A DNA stretch of 64,000 nucleotides. Source: Oopsacas minuta. Taxonomy: Eukaryota > Animalia > Porifera. The first letter of the stretch is position 1; each line of letters opens with the position of its first letter. Below, in pieces: positions 4 to 45,490 of this stretch. Below the pieces are notes generated by a model. It made no database searches and was not told the origin of the DNA. It was given only the letters and a program-made list of their open reading frames with translations. Position numbers and translations under genes: made by a program. Location: contig JAKMXF010000297.1 of the NCBI GenBank assembly GCA_024704765.1, positions 248,001 to 312,000 on the forward strand, written 5' to 3'.

Positions 4-2114
4 TCAAACAACAACATAAGGCGATCTTTTGAGGATATAGGATTAGAATTAATCAGCTGATTACCAGCTTGAGGTGTTAGACTGTCTGTCTCTTGATCAG
101 GACGTAATACCATGTATACGTTCTGAGTTAGATTAGAATACTGCTTGAGGATACGTAGAAGAGTCTCTCTCTTTTCTCTGATGTCATCACTATCATTTTC
201 TCCTCCCTCTTCAAGACTTAGTTTCCGTTTCTGTTTGTCAGTCAGCTGTTGAATGACCTGTAGAATATCAGAGGAGAGGAGACTATTACCACTCCTTAGG
301 AGGGCGTGAAGTCCTGATAACAGATGGATAGGACTGTCTATAGCTAAGAGTATCTTCTCAGCTTCAGAGAAGTTAAATACAGGTCGTAGTAGAGTATTTT
401 TGAATAACTTGAATAGAACCTAAAATATGATAACATTATGTATTAACTATCTAATATAATTTAGCTTACTGACCTCGTCTTGAGCTTGGTCTACTAGTGT
501 AGGAGGTAGAGTGAGGTGGAATGGTACAATAATCTCCCTAACAACGCCTGAAGAATGTAATACAAATGTGGTAGCTAGTGGCGATGTGTAGCCCCTTGTT
601 ATTTGACCTACCCTCCTCTGTTGCTGAATCAGCTGTCCTAGTCCTAAGATCCCGTGAGGTGTGTGTAACAAGCGAGCTCCTTTCCCAATAGTGAATGCAG
701 CTATTCTAACACCTGACTGTGCAGGCCAGATTTCAAGAATTCCCCGTTTAGGCGCGTAAATAGCTAAAAATAGTCCCTCTCTCCCCAGTCCCTCTTCCTT
801 ACATTGTATCCAACCACATTGTGCGTCCCTATACCCCTTCCATATCCGGGAGACTACTTTACGCCGAGTGTCTAGCAGAAGAACACGACCAAAGTTATCT
901 GTAGCTACAGCTAGTACTCCTCTAGGGGATAGACTGATAGAAGAGACCTTACGAGGTGCATCGGATATATTAGAGTTAAGAGGAAGTCCTGTGGATCGGA
1001 GAATACGAGGAGGCTTCTTCTTAACTTCCTCTTTAGTACCTGAGGCTCCGTGTTCATTCTGGCCAAACCCAAGGGAAAGCCATCCTCCAGCTGATGAGAG
1101 TCTAGCACTTACAGCTGTCTTAACACGTGTAGCTACTTCTGCCACTATCTCAGATACATTAAGACTGTTTTGATCATTAATTAAATAGAATCCAAACATA
1201 GGGGTGCATCCCCCTGTCAAGAACTGTTCCTCTGGGTTAGCCACACCCCTCACCCTCTGCTCGAATCCACCCAGCACACAGGCGTCCTGCAGGTGGTCAA
1301 ATAGAGACGGAACAACTACACCCAGATAGACAACGTCATTAATATCTTTAGCATCCTCGAATCTCCATTTTCTATGCTCTAATCCGGTTAGATTATTGTT
1401 ATTATTGGCGCCATCAGCTGATACAGAGCTTGTTCTGCAAGACATAGCTAATGCAGATCCTGATATACTCACTACAGCTGTATTGTACAGTAGTAGAATG
1501 CTCTCTTGATCGGATAGAGGGACACGGGGATTGGTACTCACGGCGAGACAACTTGTGAAACATCGTAGCTTCCTAACAGGCTCCTCGTGTAATAGCTGTT
1601 CAAATAATAAGATAGCCTCGTCAGAGTATACCCTCAAGAAACCGGAAGTGAAGCCTACAGCAAACACATCTGTTAATATTGGCTCTCCCTCTGCCTGGAC
1701 CCCTCCCTCTCCATTACGAGTAGTAGTCGGTAACAGAAGTGTTAGAGCTATAGCATCAGTAGATTCATCTCCTGGATCTTCTGAGTCAGCTGATATTAAA
1801 GGTTGAGCTTGTGCATGGATGTTATATGAAATACTATAAGGTCCGTCTCGAGCTCCCGGACAGGACTTGAGGATTAAGATGTGTCGGGATGACAGGAGAG
1901 CTAGGTACTTCCTGTTAGGTGAAAATAAGAGGAGACTCTTCTGGATAAGGGATGAATCCCCAGGACTAGGGTACTGTAGTTCCCATGGACCGGTTGTATC
2001 ATTGATTTCTGCAGCAGCTGACTGTCTAACTCTACTCTCTAAGTCGAGTACTGATAATTCGTAGAGATAGTTTATTGGTAGCTCTGACAACAGCTGAAGT
2101 TCTACACTAGACAT
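4..2114 (-). CDS. RAB3GAP2: Rab3 GTPase-activating protein non-catalytic subunit (N-terminal WD-like domain); exons 2114-474 and 419-4, gene may continue beyond the window start
   Basis: Motifs LSPRGVLAVATDNFGRVLLLD, RIWKGYRDAQCGW, LAIYAPKRGILEIW match the Rab3GAP150 N-terminal domain. ATG at 2114 (the ORF-track TTG at 2132 is not the start). A 54-nt intron 473-420 (GAG|gtcagt...ttttag|GTT) joins an open frame VLFKLFKN... that runs to TGA at 4-6; a possible donor near 62 may extend the gene out of the window. Confidence 0.85.
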
Positions 2115-2900
2115 AACACTGTATGGTAACAATTAGAATTATGTAGTAATCTAGTTTAGTAATTATTTTATGAATTACAAGTCACGCAGAACTATGTGTT
2201 CTAGTTTACGGTAGAACATACGTATTTCATCTATGTATACATTTTATAAGTTCTCACGCTTGACTAGCGATATATTCAGTAAATTCAATTCAAAAGATTG
2301 TCCAAAATATAATATAAGAGGATTTAATGAGGATGTCGTAAGTTCTATAAACTGAATTACATGGCATGATTTTAAAATTTCCATTATAATTACGTATATT
2401 ACACGAAATTAGTTTTCTAACCAGCAACCTAGGATGCTACGTTTTGACAAAAATCGTATGATATCAGTTATTTAACCATGGATGGCAGATGTAGTCTATT
2501 TTAAGTTACGTATTTACAAATCTCCCCGACCAACCAAGCAAGGAGTGCCTCCAAATGACCTAGAACAACATCTCATTATCACATTAGGATAATAATTAAC
2601 ATCTATAGAAATATTCAAGTTTGCAGTTAGGTGCCAGAGAATAAATCAAACAAATTATCCTACACACATTAGATGGTTGGTTTCATGAACAAACATAACA
2701 GCATTTGAGGATTTAAATCTCGGAAATTAAAGGGAAAATAATTCAAAAACTCTATGACGTTAATACACGTATAGAATTTGCATTAGGTTTTGCTAATGTA
2801 GTTCACTCAATGCTGGATATGATCTATTATCTGAACTAGACAAGATATGAACAATAGCTAAAATTACATACTCAAGCTAGGAAGGAGTCATAATAATCTA

Positions 2901-4546
2901 CTATGTGAGACGCTTAGCCTTTGTGTACAGTGAGTTGACTACTTCTCCCATTTGTGAGAAAGTGTCCAAAGCTGCTTCGTATGTGCGGTCAGCCTCTGAC
3001 TCATCGAAGACAATCAGGTTTCCGTTTCCTTGGTCTAAAATCCCATGGAATGTCTTGTCAAGGATCATTTTAGACAGTTTATGTTCAACCAAGTCAACAG
3101 GGAGATCTATTAGAAGGGCAACATGTGAAATTTCTACTATAGAATAAGGTTCTATGATTTTACACAGGTTCTTCTCTAGCAAATCATCATATAGAGTCTC
3201 TAAATGAGTTTTTATTATCGTGTCTGCGCCTAAATAAGATTCGTATTGGACTAGTGTTTGTTTGAATTTTGCTAGAGAACGCTCAGAGCTTGCTTTGGCT
3301 ACAGCTTGCATTGCCAGTATTTCATTAGACAAATAGTTGAGGGTTAGTTTGCCAGAGAGCAGTCCATCAACTTCTGAAGAATTCCCCATCATTATCTTAG
3401 CAAGCAGCATATACTTCAACCCAAGTCCTGCATGAATCTTATCTCCAAAAGAATCAAATCCCTCAAACGCCTCGAAGAAGTAAGAAAAAGAAGTTTTAAA
3501 ATCTCTCTCTTCGGCGTGTAATATGCCGGATTGTAGGTCAAGCGCTGCCTGTATTTTTGGCGGACAATAGATAGCATTAGCAGTCGTACGAGCAGATGTT
3601 AGTGCAGCTCTTGATTTAGCAACGTTCTTAACACTGAAGTATGCCTTACTCTCTAACAATTGTATCTCCATAAGTAAAGCCTTGTCATCTAACTTCCTCA
3701 GTTCTCTTAGCAGCTTCGTGCCTAGCTCCAGAGCAGGACTGTAGTTACAGTTATCAACCTGTAGCGCCATAAGACGTGCCTCAAGAGATTGTCTCAAGTA
3801 AACGCGTTTCTCCATCTCTGCCCATTCGATATACATCTCCACTATGCTGACTTTATCTTCAAGAGGTACTATGCTATTCTCAATTGTAAGATATTTGTTT
3901 AGTGTGTCTGTTACTATCTTTGCTGCTTTCTGCTTGGGGAATGGATGTAGACAGTAGCGCAGATTGTATAACAAACTGCGGAATATGTGGCGGTGTTTCT
4001 CTAGAGCGGAGAGGTCATGGTTTTCAGAGGTACAAGACTTTTTCAGAATATCACCACATTCAGCGAGACTCAATTCCTTCTGCTTCGTAACCTCTACAGA
4101 TTCCTGGTCTACAAAGTCTAGAGCCATCATAGCTACTGAAGCTTCCATACGCGAATCCGAATCTAGTAATTTGTCGAATATTTTCGCGCTTAGCATCACT
4201 AACGGGACTTGATCCCCATTTTCTATTCACAAACAATAATTAATACATTAATATTCATCAACAAATGAAAGAATATAATTATGTCTCACAAACCTGTACC
4301 AATTGTTCTCTCTTTTGATTGTAAGCAATCTTTAGGAAGAAATCCCTGTTCTAAGTCAGGCATGGCTAGCAGGACTCCCACTATTGTAGAGGATAGGTTG
4401 GTAGATCCTAGGTTATTTACTCTCCCTATACACTGATTCAGACACTCCTTCAGCAACAGTCTTATATCAGGCACTCCCGCATTGGCTAGGTCTTGACTGT
4501 TGAGAAACTTGTAGAAGATGAGTCGAAAGTGGAAGACTTCATCCAT
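2901..4546 (-). CDS. PSMD11: 26S proteasome lid subunit RPN6/PSMD11 with N-terminal extension; exons 4546-4294 and 4222-2901 (524 aa)
   Basis: EKRVYLRQSLEARL, LRELRKLDDKALL, RAALTSARTTANAIYCPP, SYFFEAFEGFDS and a C-terminal PCI domain are diagnostic. The 86-aa ORF 4286-4546 splices in frame (ACA G|gtttgt...gtgaatag|AA AAT GGG, 71 nt) to the main ORF. The gene call is very firm; the first exon is less so. Confidence 0.9.
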
Positions 4547-4948
4547 TTAGCTATTCGTATATTAAAGTTATAAGCTCATATCTGGGATGATATTAGTAAC
4601 TACTATAATAGTATTGGACCGTTTTAAACAAGTCAGTAGGCGTATTTGCATACATAGACTCACGAGCAAGAATCAGAGTAGATAATGAATTAGTACAAAG
4701 CAGGACTATTCAATAAACGAATATTATGCTGACGTGTGATGAATACTTTAATAAATTATCCAATTATGTGAGGATTGCACAACTGATATAAAATTGTGCA
4801 TCTATCACTTATCCAGCCCTGAAGAATTGTATTCAAAAGTGTCTGTAACTTGTATTTGGGCAATGACTCATAGAGAAGAAATTCATGACTTTAGAGTGTA
4901 ATATAATAAAAATATCAACAATTTGGCTAGATGAGATGTAAAATACAT

Positions 4949-5491
4949 TCAAATTAAATTATCTTCATTTCTAATATACTCTCCTATATCAGCTTGATGT
5001 AATACTATTATAGTACCAGGATCACTATGTCTACATTCTTGTGTTGATTTAGCAGCTACTCCGAAGCCAAGAGGCAGATTAGCCATGTTGAAGACGACTA
5101 TTCCTTGGTGCTGAGAGATACTATCAGATAAACGACCAACTCCAGACTTGAGCACGTTATTTCCATACAGAAATGACTGCTCTGCTCCGGATTTTACCCA
5201 AACCTTACCAGTTGCGTACTGAGACAGATACTCCAGAGCTGTTATATGTAATCTAAACTTTTTACCAGCTGTAAACTTCCCGAAACAACTCCCAACAGAG
5301 ATTAGCTGCTTCCTACTTACTGATAATGAGTTTGTTAGTAATTCTTCATTCAAATAATATACTCGTTCTTTGTGTAACCGGAATGAATAGTTTCCATCTT
5401 GTCTGTCAATCAAGTGACGTATATTGTCTCCGATAAATTTAGATAACTTCTCGAAAAATATTTTCGTTTCTTCTACTGTTAATGGCCTCAT
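4949..5491 (-). CDS. NIP7: 60S ribosome subunit biogenesis protein NIP7 (180 aa, PUA domain), intronless
   Basis: [21 protein letters not shown] start, [39 protein letters not shown] end. True ATG at 5491. Confidence 0.95.
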
Positions 5492-6294
5492 TATATAATT
5501 CACTAAATGGAATCTATTAGCTATTACTATCAGTGATTCCAACTTAAATTTTGACAAAACCCATGCCAAAGCATAAAAATCCCAAGCTATGCCAAAAATG
5601 TGTTATGCAGGCAAATATCTTTCACCAACAAACTATATATTGTAGATACAAGAAATTAATGATAGAATGGTCTTAGAAAGAACTCCAATAATCCCAAAAA
5701 CTTGAGAATAAATTTCAAGTCTTGGGGGTTTATCCCTACACACATGAGCAAAAATTCCAAGAATTTGGGAAAAACAAGCGTAGGAGACTAGGAGACACTT
5801 ATGACTATAGGCATAGCGATATAAGGGCTGGTAAGCATGCGTTGGAGAACTAGAGTATTACCCGAATCAGCGATTACTCTTATTGCTTATAAATCATGAT
5901 ACAAGTCGTCCGAAAAGAGTATGACTATGTCATATTTATAGACCCCTTGTAACTGTTCTCTGGCTTTCAAATTTTTCCCTCTTTTATGAGGGAAAAATAC
6001 GATTTAGTAATTTCGCTTGGATTATAAGCCCCAGGTATCCCTGGCAGGTTGGTAAGTATTTTATGTGCGTAAAGATCCATTCCTTAAGCCCCGAATAAAG
6101 CATTTCTTATAAAACTGTGATACTAATCTAGCAATGAATGGAGATTATTAGATTAAATAAAAATTTCGTAGATCAGCTAGGACTCAAGAAATATCGAAAG
6201 AATAAGAATGAAATCAATAATTGTCTTCTTTAATAAAGTTATGATATCATAAAAATCAAAAGAATTAATAAATACATTTTCGTTAGTTTACTGG

Positions 6295-6648
6295 CTAAGT
6301 CCCGCGATAGGTTGTGTAAGAGTAAGGACTTAACAGCAAAGGAACATGAAAATGTGAATTCGGATCATTCACAACGAAAATAACTTCTACGAATGGAAAA
6401 AAGCTCTTTTCTTTGAATTCTTCAAAGTAAAGTGAAGTTTGGAAAGTCAGTTTATAGTTTCCAGCCTGAAATTGTTCCATTTGGAGTAAATCTAAACATC
6501 TACCGTCCTTGTTAGTAACACTGTGTTTAATGAGATTCCACTTATCTTGTATTGTGTCATGATAATATAAAGAAATGGCTAATCCCTGAGCTGCTATACC
6601 TCTACTCGTATCAAGTACGTGAGTAGTTATTGCGCTTGTAGATGACAT
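6295..6648 (-). CDS. URAH: 5-hydroxyisourate hydrolase (transthyretin-like protein), 117 aa
   Basis: ITTHVLDTSRG, TNKDGRC, FFPFVEVIF, HFHVPLLLSPYSYTTYRGT. ATG at 6648; the upstream in-frame stretch has no ATG. Confidence 0.93.
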   Translation of the reverse strand: MSSTSAITTHVLDTSRGIAAQGLAISLYYHDTIQDKWNLIKHSVTNKDGRCLDLLQMEQFQAGNYKLTFQTSLYFEEFKEKSFFPFVEVIFVVNDPNSHFHVPLLLSPYSYTTYRGT

Positions 6649-37562: not shown

Positions 37563-37643
37563 TTAAGCTACGACGTAGTTCACTTTCATGAAGAATATAT
37601 TTTTTGTAGGATGAAAATTTGCTTTTATTTTTTAGCTTATACA

Positions 37644-38438
37644 ATGGTCAGACGCGCGTTCATATTGATTCCTGCATTCTGTATACACTTGTGCGTTATA
37701 CTCTACTCTTTATACATAGAGTACAAGTTCCTATACCTCTGTCAGCTGTTTGGTTCTCTTTCTAACACATTATTCTATATACACTGGTTCTGTGCAATAT
37801 CTGCATTATGTCTGCATTCCTTCCTGCTATTCCTGGACCCAGGATACACCGAGAAGAACACAGCTACAGAAAAAGACGTACCTGATCATCTCGTGCATAA
37901 GGAACGGATCAGATTCTGCGATAAATGCAACTCTCTCAAAACCCCACGTATTCACCACTGCAGCACCTGTGCTCGCTGCGTGTGGCGCATGGATCACCAC
38001 TGTGTATGGCTAGCTCGTTGTGTAGGTCATCGTAATCAGAAGTATTTCATTCACCTACTATTCTATCAGCTGTGTTGTGCATACATGGATATCGTTGTTG
38101 TATCAGGTGCCGTGTTATTTGGCGGTACAGTACCTGAATGTCAAGAGAGACTACCTTTTGATGGATACGGAACTCGTATTTTCAACGTATGCTTCTCTTA
38201 TGCCATGTGTATCGGATTCATTGCCTTCCTGTCTAACTTATTCTTGATACAACTGTACTGTGCAGCTTATGATACAACTTATGTAGAGATTATGAAGGGA
38301 AGGAAGTCAAGCAACAAATCTACAACAATGGATAATTTGAGAATGGTATGTGGTCCCTTACCACTCTTGTGGGTAATTCCGTGTACTGCTCCACAACAAG
38401 TAGAGTCAGTTAGACCAGCAGAACTGTTCAGTGCTTGA
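37644..38438 (+). CDS. DHHC palmitoyltransferase (ZDHHC family), intronless
   Basis: FCDKC...KTPRIHHCSTCARCVWRMDHHCVWLARCVGHRNQKYF, four TM segments, DTTYVE (TTxE motif). Confidence 0.92.
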   Translation: MVRRAFILIPAFCIHLCVILYSLYIEYKFLYLCQLFGSLSNTLFYIHWFCAISALCLHSFLLFLDPGYTEKNTATEKDVPDHLVHKERIRFCDKCNSLKTPRIHHCSTCARCVWRMDHHCVWLARCVGHRNQKYFIHLLFYQLCCAYMDIVVVSGAVLFGGTVPECQERLPFDGYGTRIFNVCFSYAMCIGFIAFLSNLFLIQLYCAAYDTTYVEIMKGRKSSNKSTTMDNLRMVCGPLPLLWVIPCTAPQQVESVRPAELFSA

Positions 38439-38586
38439 TGTTGTTTTGTTTTAAGTCGTTGATGTAGCTTGTTTTAAGGTTCATATAAGTATATTTATAA
38501 AAGATATTCTCTATACAATGACTCTACATTATTTCCTACCAATTTAGAAAATATTTAACCATAATTCATTTACCAGTGTTTAGCAT

Positions 38587-41500
38587 ATGGCTTCTAAATC
38601 ATACAGTCCAAGAGTACGAGGTTCTTTGTCAATACACAGCGACAGTACTCTACCCCCTGAAGTTATCCGACACTTCTTCTTTCCGAAGAGTTGTCCCCTT
38701 CTAGCTGATTCTTGTGCACTATATGAATTGCAGCTTAGTCCAGGACGGAAGAAAAACTTTCTACAACAGAGGGCCATGTCGCCTACTAGCTTTATGGAAT
38801 CTCCAAACGATAACTTGGTATGTATTTCCTATTCTCTTTTCCTTTATTATTATTTATAAACAGTAAAATTTATAGTTCTTGTCCATCAATCGGGCAGACG
38901 GCTACTGGTTCGAGACGAAGCCATCTGCTCGCCGGTACACTAACAGTGCTAGTACAAACAGTAGCTCGTCTCGTGGAGGTTCTGCTAGAACTGAGCATAC
39001 ATTAGATTTACTGGGAGAGGAACCTAATGTAGCAATTAGGAAGAAGAGAAGAGCTGCTCAGAGTTTTGGAGGCTACGAGGAATGTGATTTGTATAAGTTG
39101 ATACGAGATGAAGGTCAGCTGGATCGTGTGTATAGTTCTCTGTAATTTTACTTATTACTTCAATTTTAGATATACATTTGATATACGAGATTGAATATCA
39201 TGAAAGTGAGAACTATCGCAGATTCTTCAAAGATCGTCCTCACTTCAACTATTTTACTCACTCAAGTTCTGAATCTAAGCAAGGTCCTTGCCTCCTCTCT
39301 ATAATGCCGTATAGCGAATCTAGCTACCAACCTAACAATCCTTCTTTTAATGTAAGTTCTACAGTCAACTCTAGTTATATCCAAGCTGAAGGGACCGCGA
39401 TAATTAATCCGGTATGAGAAGAGTTTGATATAACCGATGGAATGATGTTACTCTGATGGTTTGTGACCATATTGTGCAATTTTAGGCTCCGATATAACGG
39501 GGAGTTAGCCGTATCTTTATTTACAGTAGTGCAATAATTATTGCCATTGCATGCAACAAAATGTCTATACAAAAATATCTAAATCAAAATAAATAAAAAG
39601 ATCTTTGTCATCATGATACAGCACATAATTGGTTAATACGTAATACCCTCTATCTGAGTCTATCAAATATACTCACTCGATTTAGACAATTAGTGATACA
39701 GTCCTATACTACATATTTCACACCTTTAGTTATGTGTATAATTCTAATTTAACAAAATCCCTTCCTCAGCCCCCTCTGCATCCTCATTCAAATGCTCCCC
39801 TCTACCGAGTAATCCTCAGATCAAAGGAGCACTTCTTGCATGGAATAATCAAAGCTAAAGATTTCCATGCTTCTAACGTTAGAAGTTGTGTACAAGCACT
39901 TGCCAGAGAACTGACGTTGGAAGAACAGTTCAGATTTGCAACATATCCTAAGGCAGAGCTAGAGATACTCAACATGGATGAAGCATTTGTCAAGGATAAG
40001 GTCAATTATTAATTTGTAGAATACGTATCTACAGTAGAACTCGGTTAAACGTGCTTGTCTCGAAAAACCGTAATTTTCTCCTATCTAATCCAATGATTCG
40101 GTTAAGACGGACTATATCTTATCTTATCGTTAGAAATCTGAATAATACTAAACTTCCATTAATTATTTCGGGGTAATTATTCGTATACTACGTACGTAGA
40201 TTCATACTGTTAGTGATAAGACATACCTCGGTTAATATAGGTTTTTTTGTTTCCCAAGCGAGTACGTCTTAACCGAGTTCTACTGTACAACAATAAGATT
40301 TTGATTGTAACATTAATTGTTATATACATAGTATTATGTTTATATAGGTTAAAGTAGGAGTGATAAATATAAAACCAGGACAGAAGACAGAACTAGAATT
40401 CTTAAGTAATCAAGATGAGCCAGGTCTGTTCAGAGACTTCCTAGCTATTCTCGGAGATCGTGTTGATCTGAAAGGATTCCCTGAGTTTGATGGGGGGTTG
40501 GATATATGCAATAACACTACAGGGAAGTATTCTGTTTACACGAGGTAAGACTATCTTCGTTCCCATAATATAAATCCGATTACAAACATACTTAGAGACA
40601 GACATTCCACCTACTCTCTTAATATTGTATTATTTAGATGGGAGGGATATGAGGTAATGTGTCATGTCGCTACACTACTACCTTACTCCCCAACTGATGA
40701 ACAGATGGTACAGAAGAAGAGACACATAGGAAATGATTTGGTTTGTATTATATTTTTAGAAGGAGATGCTGTATTCTCACCGCGAGCAGTTAAGTCTCAA
40801 TACATACACGTATTCATTGTGGTTAAAGTATGCTACGAAAGAGATACTGATCTACCAGTAAGTAAATTGTATTATATAGCTTAAATACAACAACGGGTTC
40901 GTATAAATGGGATGATAATATAATGTCAAATTCTATAAATTGCGGTTAGGTATACGAATAGTTAGTACGGAAGTAGTATAGTGGATGCACGGTTATAAAC
41001 GGTTATAAGAACGCCCTTTGAAGTAGCCAAGCATGTTATAATAACCGCACTATATATCAGGAGAACCGTGAATTTTAATTCATATATTCACTCAGATATT
41101 ATATGCTTTTATGGAGGTTCGGTAAGCTGTCAATAAACTTTCCGTCTCTCTCCTCGTAACATCATGTGCAATCCTTGAATAGTAGTATGTGGAGTATAGG
41201 TATCCTACGTATAGAAATATTAATACCGAGTCGAACTGTATTATCCCTAAGTCACACAAGGTTAATAGTACGGCTGAAATGTAGCCTGAAGCTAATACTC
41301 CCTCCTGACTAGGCTCTGGCAATGTAACATGATATGTTGATTGGAAAAAACAAGGATCAGCTGGAATCAGTCCCACCCAGTTTCCTACTGTGCTACATAA
41401 CACAGAAATTAGATATATCGTTAGTGAAATAATGAATATTGTTATTCTTCTTTGAAATTTAGTAATTATCCTATCCTGCTGCCCATATCTCGAGTTACAA

Positions 41501-44268
41501 TCTAGCCAATAAGTATTATCTCTTCTACCCTTTAGAATATTGTTTAGTTTCAGCGAGAGCTTGATAAACATAACGTAATCTATCGTCAAAAGGATTACAA
41601 ATGCTACCGATCCTGCCAAAAATGTCCATAGTATTCCAGTCAACAAAAAGACAATAAAGAATTGAATGTATGCGAAAACTAGGAATTGGTAAATACGATT
41701 AAAATTAACTTTACACCCTTGGACGTTGTGGGCTTGTGCCAGATAGTACATAAGAACTGATAATAGTAAAACTAACGAAAGCAATAACCCATCTGTAATG
41801 CCAATACGAAAGAGATGGATAGGGAGCCAAGAGAATGAATTCACTGGTGGGTAGATGGCGTGCAATCTGTTACATGATGTCCAGTAGGAATAGGTGGAGG
41901 TGATGTTTTGAGGTAAATACCCGAAGAGGAAAAATAAGCCGTATCCAATTCCTTTTATAAATAAGTGCAATGCTTCAACAATAAGTATAATGATGAAAAA
42001 TATGTTTGTATACAATTCTATGGTCGCTTGAGTGTATTCGTTTGTTGTTTCGGGAGTATTTCTTCGCTTCAACCATTGTCTTCTTATTCGTTTCAGTAGG
42101 AAGAGCGACCAACAACTAGAGAATGTGAATACAGTGAGGTTACCTATCACAACCAGACTGAGTAATGTTGGGAAAAGATAGCCAAGAATTTCAAAGAACA
42201 ACATGACTTTATCCTGATGATAAATTGGTGAAATCTCAAATTAATATGCTAGTATACCGCACAATGTAACTAAGTTAGAGTTGCTAGTTGGACTAATTAA
42301 TAATTCATTATTTGAAAGCTGATATCGGCTATAAAATTACCTGCTTCTACTAAATTCAGAAGAATCGTGTATGACTCATTTTCTCCTCTACTGCTATTGC
42401 AATGGACTTTAATGTTGTTTGAAATTTTCATTTATATTTATCACCATTGTAGGTTCGCTACAAGATAGCTACTGTATGCAGGGATGGCGTGCCTATATCC
42501 AGTCCTTATCTTTTTGAGAAAGATATCTTCGAACCAGGCCCAGAACTCAAAGATTTCATTATCTGTAAATGTATCAATTCTGAGAAAGCTGCTGTGAAGA
42601 GTCCCAAATTCCAGCAGCTACAGAAACGTACTCGTACGTACTTATTACAGCACTTGTGTAGAGCCATGGAGGATTATGAGTGTGTGCGGAAATTTCCTCT
42701 TCGAAAAGGAATAGAACATTCATTACAATTAAAGGCTGAGATTTACGAGAATGTAGAGAGATTAGTCTCTGATTATAGAAAAGTATTTTCAGCACCAGAA
42801 GTATGTGATGTTGTTTTTATTGTTAGTCCTAACCAAGTCCCAATTTTCGGTAAGTCATTTCAACAAATTTGATACGGACAGTCCTCTGATATACGTAGAT
42901 ACGGGGTGCTAGGGGCCCCGAAATTGCTACCCAGTTTCCCTGTTTCTGCCAAATTCCCCGTTTGTGGAAGTTTAACTGTGTGTACTTGTATAATAATTTG
43001 ATAGGAATAAAGGCTATTATAGCAAGCAGATCCAGAACTCTAGCCAGCTTACTCAACCAGTCACCTGTTAAAGAGAAAAAGCATAAGAAACAAACAAAGA
43101 GATCTGCTCTCACTAGACGACCTAGTAATTCTATATCTCATAAACTACGTCGCAAGTTCAACTGTGAATCTCCTGTACTACAGCGTCCTACTAGCCCATT
43201 ACTCAGGAGCAGTAAGAGGAAATATTTCAGAGGGAAGAGGAGTAGCTTTAGAGGAGTAGAGAAGCTCAGTATACGGGTACTTAAGGAGTATTCACACCTT
43301 GACCAGTACTGGTTCGAGGAATTTGACGAGGTAGATTATCACATATCTGTATTATACTTACATTTACTGATTATTCTATATAGATAAGCTTCAGTCAATT
43401 AATGGAGTATCTACTGTGTGGACAATGTGTTATCAATCCACTGACGATAGCTGGACTAGTTGGAGCATCAGATTTGTTTGATTTACCAGAACTAAGACAA
43501 GCTTGTTTTGAACATCTTCCTCACTGCTTGTTAGTTGACTTAATCTGTCCAGTGCTATCTTCCCTTGAATCCTATATTCATTTCCCAAGCGCTAAGACTC
43601 TTACAGTTAAAGTTAGTTAAGATTTTAATTTCGTATGTACTGTGTTGTCATGTGTACTTCTGGTAGGTTTTAGCGTTCTTAGATCTCAATGCTGAAGATG
43701 TTCTCTGTTCTGACTTCTTTCCAAATATTTCAGAGTTCTTACTCTCTTCTATTATGCAGCGGAACCTGAGAGCCCAGGAAGAAATGAAGTTAGATGCAAT
43801 TCTAGCATGGGCAGACGCTCACTCACTACCGCTTGAACAAGGAAACACTTTCATCAGTAAATATTAGTATATTCTCAAATATGTTACTAATACTACGTAG
43901 TAGGTTCATAGTCTCCAAAATTTTACCAAGCTAATATTCGTATGTCATCAATATATTTTTGCTGACATGTAATTTTCAATTTCACTTACTATTAAGTAAG
44001 TTACAGTAGAACTCGCATATTCCCGACCGCTGTGTGAGTACTCGCTCTCGCTAAGTGTCGGATCAGACAGTTATATGCAGTAGAATTGGTCATACAACAT
44101 ACATACGCTATATCTATAGGTCATATGCTTCAAAAATTGGACCTCAAGAAGCTGTCTTCATCTCAACTGATGCAGCTTGCTAACGTTAATGTAATAGATA
44201 CAGACGCTGCTATGCAGGCTATTGCATTCCAGCTTGATCCGAACTCAGTCGGGTCTTCTGAAGTTTGA
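38587..44268 (+). CDS. RapGAP-BTB-BACK fusion protein; 11 exons (38587-38817, 38876-39125, 39170-39351, 39770-40000, 40348-40544, 40638-40857, 42453-42849, 43005-43330, 43384-43611, 43667-43856, 44120-44268), 866 aa
   Basis: Rap1GAP motifs YRRFF..RPHFNY, GGLD..NNTTG..SVYT, KKRHIGND (catalytic Asn), KFQQLQKRTR, then CDVVFIV...GIKAIIASRSR, EEFDE.SFSQLMEY..CG and BACK-like EEMKLDAILAW...AIAFQLDP. All junctions are GT-AG and in phase. Confidence 0.85.
40032..40285. mobile_element. 254-bp TA-flanked MITE (Tc1/mariner-pogo type) in RapGAP intron 4
   Basis: Perfect 17-bp TIR cagtagaactcggttaa / ttaaccgagttctactg with TA on both sides. Confidence 0.88.
41092..42204 (-). CDS. Orphan seven-transmembrane protein (370 aa), intronless, nested antisense in RapGAP intron 6
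   Basis: Uninterrupted 1113-nt ORF in AT-rich DNA; about seven hydrophobic segments, basic loops after TM1 and TM5, Cys in the loops after TM2 and TM6. Confidence 0.8.
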   Translation of the reverse strand: MLFFEILGYLFPTLLSLVVIGNLTVFTFSSCWSLFLLKRIRRQWLKRRNTPETTNEYTQATIELYTNIFFIIILIVEALHLFIKGIGYGLFFLFGYLPQNITSTYSYWTSCNRLHAIYPPVNSFSWLPIHLFRIGITDGLLLSLVLLLSVLMYYLAQAHNVQGCKVNFNRIYQFLVFAYIQFFIVFLLTGILWTFLAGSVAFVILLTIDYVMFIKLSLKLNNILKGRRDNTYWLDCNSRYGQQDRIITKFQRRITIFIISLTIYLISVLCSTVGNWVGLIPADPCFFQSTYHVTLPEPSQEGVLASGYISAVLLTLCDLGIIQFDSVLIFLYVGYLYSTYYYSRIAHDVTRRETESLLTAYRTSIKAYNI

Positions 44269-44547
44269 TACAAATCTATGATTTATTTACAGCCTGACGT
44301 CACTATTCCTCGCTCTAAGAATCTAATATACTCTCAGAGCATTAAATTCAAACTAATGTTAAACAGAATCTCATGTAATCTTTTCACTTATGTTATATGT
44401 ACATAATTGTTGAATTCTGAGTATACCGTTTTTATTGTGATTTTAATCATTGTTAAGCTATTATATTCTCACTTACCAAAAAGCGCGCATTATTTCCGAT
44501 AAGTTTAACAATTTATCCATCACTTACAACTGTACAAGTTCTACTAG

Positions 44548-45490
44548 ATGTCTCTGCAATCAGGTTACCCCACAGGTACTCCATACGGTCAGCCTCCTCC
44601 TTCTGGTCAGTATACAGGTGTCCCTACATATGCAAGTCCAGGTGCACCCGCCTATGGCATTCCTGGTGCCCCTCAGGCGTATGGTGCACCCGGGGCTCCA
44701 CAGGGCCAGCAACCCTATGTTACCCCAGGTGCTGCCCAGCCTACGCCGTATAGCGCCTCAGGTATTCCTCAAACCACATCCTACGGTGCTGTGGGTACCC
44801 CCAAACAATCCCCCTACAATCAACCAGATGTCCTACAAACCTCCTACGGAGCTCTTCCTGGTTCTATGCCTCAGGTTCCAGGATATGGAGCTCCAATGGG
44901 TGGCAACCCTTATGGTACACCCGCCCCTCCAGCTGATCCGATGTGGGCTGGTTTCTCTGCAGTAGCAGGGGCAGATCAGAAGATTGATGCTGTCGAGCTA
45001 TGCAAATGTTTGACTCAGTCTGGATTTACTGGTTCTTATAAGCCATTTACACAGGAAACCTGTAAGATTATGATTGTATTATTGGACAGAAATAAAACAG
45101 GTAATACTCTACATCATTTATAACTTAGAGAAATTTTCATTTTCTCTTTAATTAGGCAAGATGGATTTCCCTGAGTACAAAGAACTCTGGGTAGTTCTAG
45201 GGAAGTGGAAGCAGACATTTGAATCATTGGATAAAGATAGGTCTGGCTCTTTGGACGAGCAAGAGCTTAAATCTGCTGTTGCCAGTTTTGGCTTCACACT
45301 ATCTCCTACAGCTATCGCTGCAGTCATGCAGCGATACAACACGAATGGAAAGATCTATTTTGATGACTTCATAGCTCTTACTACAAGAATTCGCTCTCTG
45401 TCTAACTATTTTATGTCTCGTGATACCAATAGACAGGGGATAGCTACTCTTGGCTATGATGACTTTATGTCTCACGCTATGTCATGTTAA
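44548..45490 (+). CDS. Penta-EF-hand protein, sorcin/grancalcin type, with long G/P/Y-rich N-terminus; exons 44548-45100 and 45156-45490
   Basis: DPMWAGFSAVAGADQKIDAVEL..CLTQSG..GSYKPF..ETC.IMI.LLD, ELW.VL..WKQTF...DKDRSG, NGKIYFDDFI; 55-nt phase-1 intron. Confidence 0.9.

Follow-up and report, generated by a model that had tools for sequence, protein, structure and literature searches.

Gene structure and transcript evidence

The 64,000-nt stretch of Oopsacas minuta contig JAKMXF010000297.1 analyzed here (the window) carries, on its plus strand at 38587-44268, a gene predicted to encode a RapGAP catalytic domain joined to a BTB domain and a BACK-like region, and this gene very probably belongs to the metazoan radish (rsh) family. 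The coding model comprises 11 exons with 2589 coding nt, corresponding to 862 amino acids (aa) and a stop codon. A preliminary description, made from the letters of the sequence, gave essentially this model, its count of 866 aa differing trivially from ours. All 10 introns are GT..AG and the exon phases are mutually consistent. The locus is AT-rich (about 36-38% G+C) with short introns, and no tandem repeats were found in the gene.

Splicing was followed in X4, one of four sequencing runs from the same sample, which is taken as RNA from its behavior and is not on record as RNA. The X4 depth was about 1000-6000 over exons and 5-80 over introns, and spliced GT..AG contigs at the exact coordinates of the model (after correction for the stated cut offsets) were present for 10/10 predicted joints, including exon 6/exon 7 (40857/42453, depth 1219) and exon 7/exon 8 (42849/43005, depth 1633). 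The whole stretch was also covered by one contig of the DNA run X1 with zero differences, so mis-assembly is not an issue. From the tiling of the contigs and the two joints of exon 7, we infer that the RapGAP and BTB sequences lie on one continuous transcript, as far as the RNA-like X4 run can indicate. We also noted one X4 contig in which 10 letters (AAAAAACTTA) at window position 38574, immediately ahead of the start region, differ from the genome; they may be non-templated letters at the 5´ end of a transcript, or else belong to a short leader or upstream exon.

Domains of the predicted protein

Pfam, structure and homology searches were made exon by exon rather than on the joined 862-aa protein. 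Exon 1 (38587-38817), which holds the start codon and whose joint to exon 2 (38817/38876) is among those in X4, encodes a Ser/Pro-rich N-terminal region in which Pfam found no domain, and exon 2 (38876-39113) continues this region, likewise without a domain. Exons 3 (39170-39351) and 4 (39770-40000), the joints of which are again present in X4, match the Rap-GAP_dimer profile (PF21022) with E-values of 7.8e-4 and 5.4e-5, respectively, both below the gathering score. The catalytic core follows in exons 5 (40348-40544; Rap_GAP profile PF02145, positions 2-50/185, E 6.7e-11) and 6 (40638-40857; positions 52-118/185, E 1.5e-23) and is completed in exon 7 (42453-42849; positions 126-184/185). Between exons 6 and 7 lies a 1595-nt intron (40858-42452) that hosts a nested antisense open reading frame (ORF), described below, and contributes no part of the RapGAP-BTB protein.

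The preliminary description had reported a Rap1GAP domain with an intact HIGND Asn thumb, which agrees with the Pfam profile over exons 5-7 and with the motif itself, preserved within KKRHIGND in exon 6. Among solved structures, Rap1GAP (1srq/3brw) is the best relative of exons 5, 6 and 7, far ahead of tuberin. In alignments to these chains (where chain index + 74 gives the Rap1GAP residue number), equivalents of K194, K285, R286, H287, N290, D291 and R388 are all kept; we take these seven residues to be the catalytic list given in the Rap1GAP structural literature.

The transition from RapGAP to BTB occurs within exon 7, a single open stretch of 132 codons translated without interruption. Residues 2-61 of this exon correspond to the C-terminal Rap_GAP helices, including the R388 equivalent, residues 62-104 form a linker of about 45 residues, and residues 105-132 correspond to BTB strands 1-2 (...FSAPEVCDVVFIVSPNQVPIF). 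Exon 8 (43005-43330) starts with BTB helix 1 (IKAIIASRSRTLASLL) and continues into a loop internal to the BTB domain, about 70 aa long with 28 Lys+Arg and 16 Ser, before the BTB strand preceding helix 3. This composition bears out the basic/Ser-rich insert that had been proposed, and the loop carries PKA-like RRPS and KRSS sites and three S/T-P sites. Exon 9 (43384-43611), for which gigaxonin is the best solved relative, encodes the C-terminal half of the BTB domain (Pfam positions 64-108/110, E 0.004, below the gathering score) and the beginning of the BACK/3-box helices. Exons 10 (43667-43856) and 11 (44120-44268, stop included), with joints in X4, encode a BACK-like helical region and a C-terminal tail with AFQLDP; exon 10 by itself had no solved-structure relative by sequence. 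Exons 10-11 carry no Pfam BACK match as window pieces and are colinear with the BACK region of family members in which Pfam does recognize BACK; from this colinear homology, and from the fold of a homolog described below, the window gene is predicted to contain a BACK region. An ESM Atlas feature search with exon 7 returned generic BTB clusters only, with scores < 0.9.

Conservation in close relatives

Used as the query of a word search, exon 7 yielded four loci (L001-L004) on long contigs of four ENA assemblies, whose proteins are 80-86% identical to exon 7. These loci are syntenic with the window, having a DHHC palmitoyltransferase gene upstream and an EF-hand gene downstream. By tblastn with each exon, the 11 exons are colinear in the relatives; that exon 1 and the first half of exon 2 are missing from L003 is due solely to the limit of the fetched sequence. 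In all four, exon 7 aligns over 132/132 residues without a stop, the AG/GT boundaries and phases are identical, including the Gly codon split to exon 8, and KKRHIGND is invariant.

The ratios of nonsynonymous to synonymous change (dN/dS, Nei-Gojobori counts), in a comparison where synonymous sites are near saturation, were 0.03-0.06 for the RapGAP exons and about 0.04 for the BTB-BACK region; the insert gave 0.18-0.19, and the N-terminus, exon 2 included, about 0.17. For the linker, the proportion of nonsynonymous differences (pN) was 0.10-0.17 versus 0.76-0.94 for synonymous differences (pS). Given the low dN/dS and the uninterrupted join in the relatives, both halves and the join are, judged from these counts, held by selection across a deep divergence. 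This conservation, together with the Pfam matches by exon and the 10 spliced joints, upholds the proposal that RapGAP is fused to BTB-BACK in one gene.

A further close relative, organism B, was represented by run X5 from a separate study. The locus (38535-44400) was found there at about 93-97% nucleotide identity, with small indels limited to introns and flanks and the gene intact over the covered parts. In L001, the intron between exons 4 and 5 contains a 272-aa ORF (3635-4453, minus strand) with a weak Pfam hit to a hAT-dimerization-like domain; as no other relative shows it, this appears to be a transposon inserted in that lineage.

Probable membership in the radish family

The preliminary description had presented the combination of RapGAP with BTB-BACK as an architecture not recognized as characterized. 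Exon 7 was queried against 1.84 billion representative proteins by exhaustive HMMER. This search returned 277 proteins, most of which match the RapGAP part alone. Full-length proteins spanning the join (query residues 2 to about 125-130) were nonetheless found in several phyla, in the sponge Oscarella pearsei, the hemichordate Ptychodera flava and Branchiostoma, as well as in the arthropods Tetranychus (mite), Ixodes (tick), Parasteatoda (spider) and Chamberlinius (millipede). Exon 7 residues 2-130 align to P0006, P0010, P0014, P0068 and P0095 of these proteins with E-values of 1e-12 to 1e-6. On these alignments, the RapGAP-to-BTB join of the window gene is homologous with that of the family and not an independent fusion. 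By Pfam, the join-spanning proteins have Rap-GAP_dimer, Rap_GAP and a split BTB (for example P0155, P0158 and P0163), often BACK and, in many cases, an N-terminal LIM domain.

Word searches with the C-terminal halves of the spider and hemichordate proteins gave 327 proteins for the spider query (best 120 listed) and 88 for the hemichordate query (all listed). PF02145 and PF00651 occurred together in 120/120 listed rows for the spider query and 80/88 for the hemichordate query; the eight exceptions, six with BTB only and two with Rap_GAP only, look like partial models. The listed matches cover insects, crustaceans, collembolans, myriapods, chelicerates, pycnogonids and Saccoglossus, and their names include "rap GTPase activating protein radish" and "uncharacterized protein rsh", among them proteins of Drosophila species. 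The name CG42629 is given to a D. busckii protein that has both domains. The architecture is thus widespread, and what had seemed unrecognized is already the plan of radish (rsh); databases contain hundreds of such proteins, ranging from sponge to amphioxus, and Drosophila rsh is itself one of them. The remark that vertebrate RapGAPs lack this fusion is correct.

Exon-wise blastp against the fetched proteins placed Oscarella P0005 first by summed score, with eight window exons (3-7 and 9-11) colinear, and seven (3-7, 9 and 10) are colinear with D. virilis rsh. Exon 9 is 40-48% identical to radish-family proteins, and exons 1 and 2 had no significant match beyond the four close relatives. A MAFFT alignment of the family, to which the window exons were added as fragments, shows a common linker and BTB start ("...EQL..DF...F....CDV.F.V..."), common BTB helix 1 and BACK helices, a variable insert, and a very similar C-terminal half of the BTB domain ("EFD...F..L.EYL..G.C......I.GL..A....DLPEL.QACF.H"). 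The AFQLDP end of the window protein is AFHADP in Oscarella and AFHVDP in Ptychodera. This motif had been read as a mark of the invertebrate serine-enriched protein (gprs) family; its presence is confirmed, but it is shared by the sponge and hemichordate radish members. The wider assignment of the BTB-BACK half to gprs is likewise not supported, as no such name occurs in the 208 listed rows and the best relatives of the matched exons are radish-family proteins, gprs being set aside here by the names of the listed relatives with no gprs sequence in the comparison. In the open literature, searches for serine-enriched protein or gprs returned unrelated acronyms only.

Many bilaterian members carry a LIM domain (PF00412) at the N-terminus (P0010, P0014, P0095, P0154, P0155, P0163, P0191 and others). 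It is absent from Oscarella P0005, the window gene and the insect members; since the sponge member P0005 also lacks it, LIM does not characterize the family as a whole.

Several observations weigh against assigning the window gene to this family. Exon 8 has no significant match beyond the four close relatives, Pfam detects neither BACK nor the N-terminal half of BTB in the window exon pieces, and it finds no LIM domain in exons 1-2, the upstream DHHC gene lying only about 150 bp from the start codon. The X4 contigs are ~115 nt long and none spans exon 6 to exon 8, and the case for orthology comes from the common architecture and from exons that match in the same order rather than from a tree. 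Even so, we consider it very likely that the window gene is a member of the metazoan radish family, probably the ortholog.

The Drosophila gene radish, an anesthesia-resistant-memory gene, was formerly CG15720 and is now CG42628 (PMC3166323). A review describes Radish as a presumed GTPase activator that has 23 PKA sites and acts by an unknown mechanism (PMC9369046). We found no paper discussing the BTB domain of Radish in the searchable open literature, and in the literature searched nothing on a RapGAP + BTB architecture and no paper describing LIM-RapGAP-BTB-BACK.

Fold of the C-terminal half

The C-terminal half of the Oscarella homolog (P0005:422-904) was modeled with a 37-row family alignment. 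Residues 210-400, covering the C-terminal half of BTB and BACK, reached a pLDDT of about 95, while the insert was disordered and the N-terminal half of BTB weak (pLDDT about 50-56). Foldseek against the PDB ranked the BTB-BACK of KLHL11 first, both alone and with Cul3 (4ap2_A; E 3.7e-5, TM by target 0.55), followed by CUL3 complexes of KLHL22 and KBTBD2. The model of this homolog supports a KLHL-type BTB-BACK with 3-box helices in the radish family but does not bear on CUL3 binding.

Neighboring genes and intron contents

The ORF in intron 6 (41092-42204, minus strand) encodes 370 aa with about 6-7 hydrophobic segments, as in a multi-pass membrane protein, had no Pfam hit, and is a separate nested gene. 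L002, L003 and L004 retain it in this intron with a length of 370-374 aa, whereas L001, where the intron is only 332 nt, lacks it. A 1515-nt contig of X4 (40967-42481) covers it at a depth of about 80, compared to 5-13 in the other introns. This suggests that the nested ORF is expressed, with a transcript overlapping the first 29 nt of exon 7.

Three introns (3, 4 and 7) show spikes in the depth of the DNA runs, at 39357-39406, 40030-40295 and 42922-42972, for example 4940 in X1 versus a baseline of 209. The spike sites have many loose ends and partial contigs and correspond to short multi-copy repeats, present in organism B too, which are possibly miniature transposons. Upstream of the radish-like gene, a single-exon DHHC palmitoyltransferase gene (37611-38438, plus strand) ends about 150 bp before the start codon. 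Downstream, a Gly/Pro/Tyr-rich ORF (44548-45123, plus strand) begins about 280 bp past the stop codon, at the position where the relatives have EF-hand ORFs. L001, L002 and L004 have the three genes in this order too (DHHC - radish-like - EF-hand). A compact genome has been published for Oopsacas minuta (PMC10280926).

Proposed activity and alternative interpretations

Because every Rap1GAP catalytic residue on the list considered above is kept, the N-terminal half is predicted to be an active Rap-type GAP, most likely Rap-specific, using the Asn-thumb mechanism. The protein would form dimers or oligomers through two modules, Rap-GAP_dimer and BTB, and the loop within BTB, with its PKA-like RRxS/KRxS and S/T-P sites, could be a phospho-regulated or localization element. 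The KLHL-like BTB-BACK may dock CUL3 or serve self-association only.

A tentative and somewhat doubtful extension of this scheme, in line with the CUL3 coupling proposed in the preliminary description, is that the protein is a CUL3 substrate adaptor in which BTB-BACK recruits CUL3 and RapGAP takes the place of the Kelch propeller, such that Rap-GTP or its partners would be ubiquitinated, or inactivation of Rap coupled to ubiquitination. The nearest structures to the BTB-BACK of the homolog, those of KLHL11, KLHL22 and KBTBD2, have all been solved with CUL3; BTB-BACK adjoins a protein-binding domain, as in CUL3 adaptors; and the two halves are co-conserved across Metazoa. However, many BTB proteins do not bind CUL3, and no paper linking Radish to CUL3 was found in the literature searched. 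In addition, the order is inverted relative to KLHL proteins, with the recognition domain N-terminal, and the BTB carries an insert of about 70-100 aa and has a low-confidence N-terminal half in the homolog. A Leu rather than an acidic residue occupies the presumed CUL3-contact position, but the by-eye alignment is uncertain here and we place no weight on it. The fuller picture, in which the radish family are ancient, pre-neuronal CUL3 adaptors whose active RapGAP replaces Kelch, so that phosphorylation of the BTB loop would control both the switching-off of Rap-GTP complexes and their tagging for ubiquitination, strikes us as improbable as a whole.

We think it less probable still that the locus also or mainly makes separate RapGAP-only and BTB-BACK-only products, the latter from an internal start, with the fused protein a minor species. 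In X4, exons 7-10 reach depths of about 3000-6400 as against about 1200-2800 for exons 1-6, which would fit such products, but contig depth cannot rank parts of one gene. Similarly, there is an ATTAAA/AATAAA-like hexamer at 42728 within exon 7, yet this exon is spliced at both ends at the depths given above, the frame is open over the join in five genomes with conserved phases, and purifying selection acts on the linker as well. In the first Drosophila radish cDNA and a former split annotation (CG42628/CG42629), the halves were reportedly handled separately, and names still differ between CG42628, cited for rsh, and CG42629, given to the two-domain D. busckii protein.

That the fusion is an artefact, two neighboring genes chained by prediction or joined by mis-assembly, has in its favor only the general risk of compact genomes with genes 150-300 bp apart and is almost certainly wrong, exon chaining being ruled out by a join that lies inside one open exon, as the preliminary description had argued, by the X1 and X4 contigs, by the identical arrangement in four other assemblies and by join-spanning annotated proteins of several phyla.

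Membership of the window gene in the radish family corrects a tempting call of a new architecture: the RapGAP-BTB-BACK plan is not new, is already in public proteomes and belongs to a family named after a Drosophila memory gene. This family is biochemically unstudied, the searchable open literature describing Radish only as a presumed activator of GTPases that bears PKA sites, and a CUL3 link or BTB-driven oligomerization of Radish is a hypothesis testable in flies. The family is under strong selection in sponges, in Oscarella and also in this genome if it is that of a glass sponge, an animal without neurons. Since the radish family is kept in sponges, its ancestral role cannot be neuronal memory. 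Should the CUL3-adaptor interpretation be true and the source a glass sponge, the machine would predate nervous systems and would have been recruited later for insect memory consolidation.

Comparison with known systems

The window gene shares with Rap1GAP and Rap1GAP2 (1srq, 3brw) the dimerization and catalytic domains, the Asn thumb and the other catalytic residues. Rap1GAP, in contrast, has no BTB-BACK and carries at its N-terminus a GoLoco motif (found in P0053 and P0066) that the window gene lacks. With the KLHL/KBTBD adaptors (KLHL11, KLHL22, KBTBD2 and gigaxonin), the radish C-terminal half has the BTB-BACK fold in common; unlike them, the window gene has no Kelch propeller, its BTB-BACK is C-terminal and a long disordered insert lies within BTB. 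The likeness to gprs, comprising BTB-BACK, a Ser-rich insert and an AFQLDP-like end, was put forward in the preliminary description, and radish proteins account for all of these features.

The closest counterpart in architecture is the radish family itself, which has, as does the window gene, Rap-GAP_dimer, Rap_GAP, a conserved linker and a BTB split between helix 1-2 and strand 3 by a Ser/basic insert, followed by BACK, which is predicted for the window gene. The PKA-like sites in the window insert also resemble those reported for Drosophila Radish. The join exon is only about 30% identical to radish members, and the domain cores reach 40-60%. The window protein is shorter than the other members (862 aa versus about 900-1650), lacks the long N-terminal extension of insects, has a shorter insert and has lost the RRGSW...RPSSPLLDS linker motif that is typical of them.

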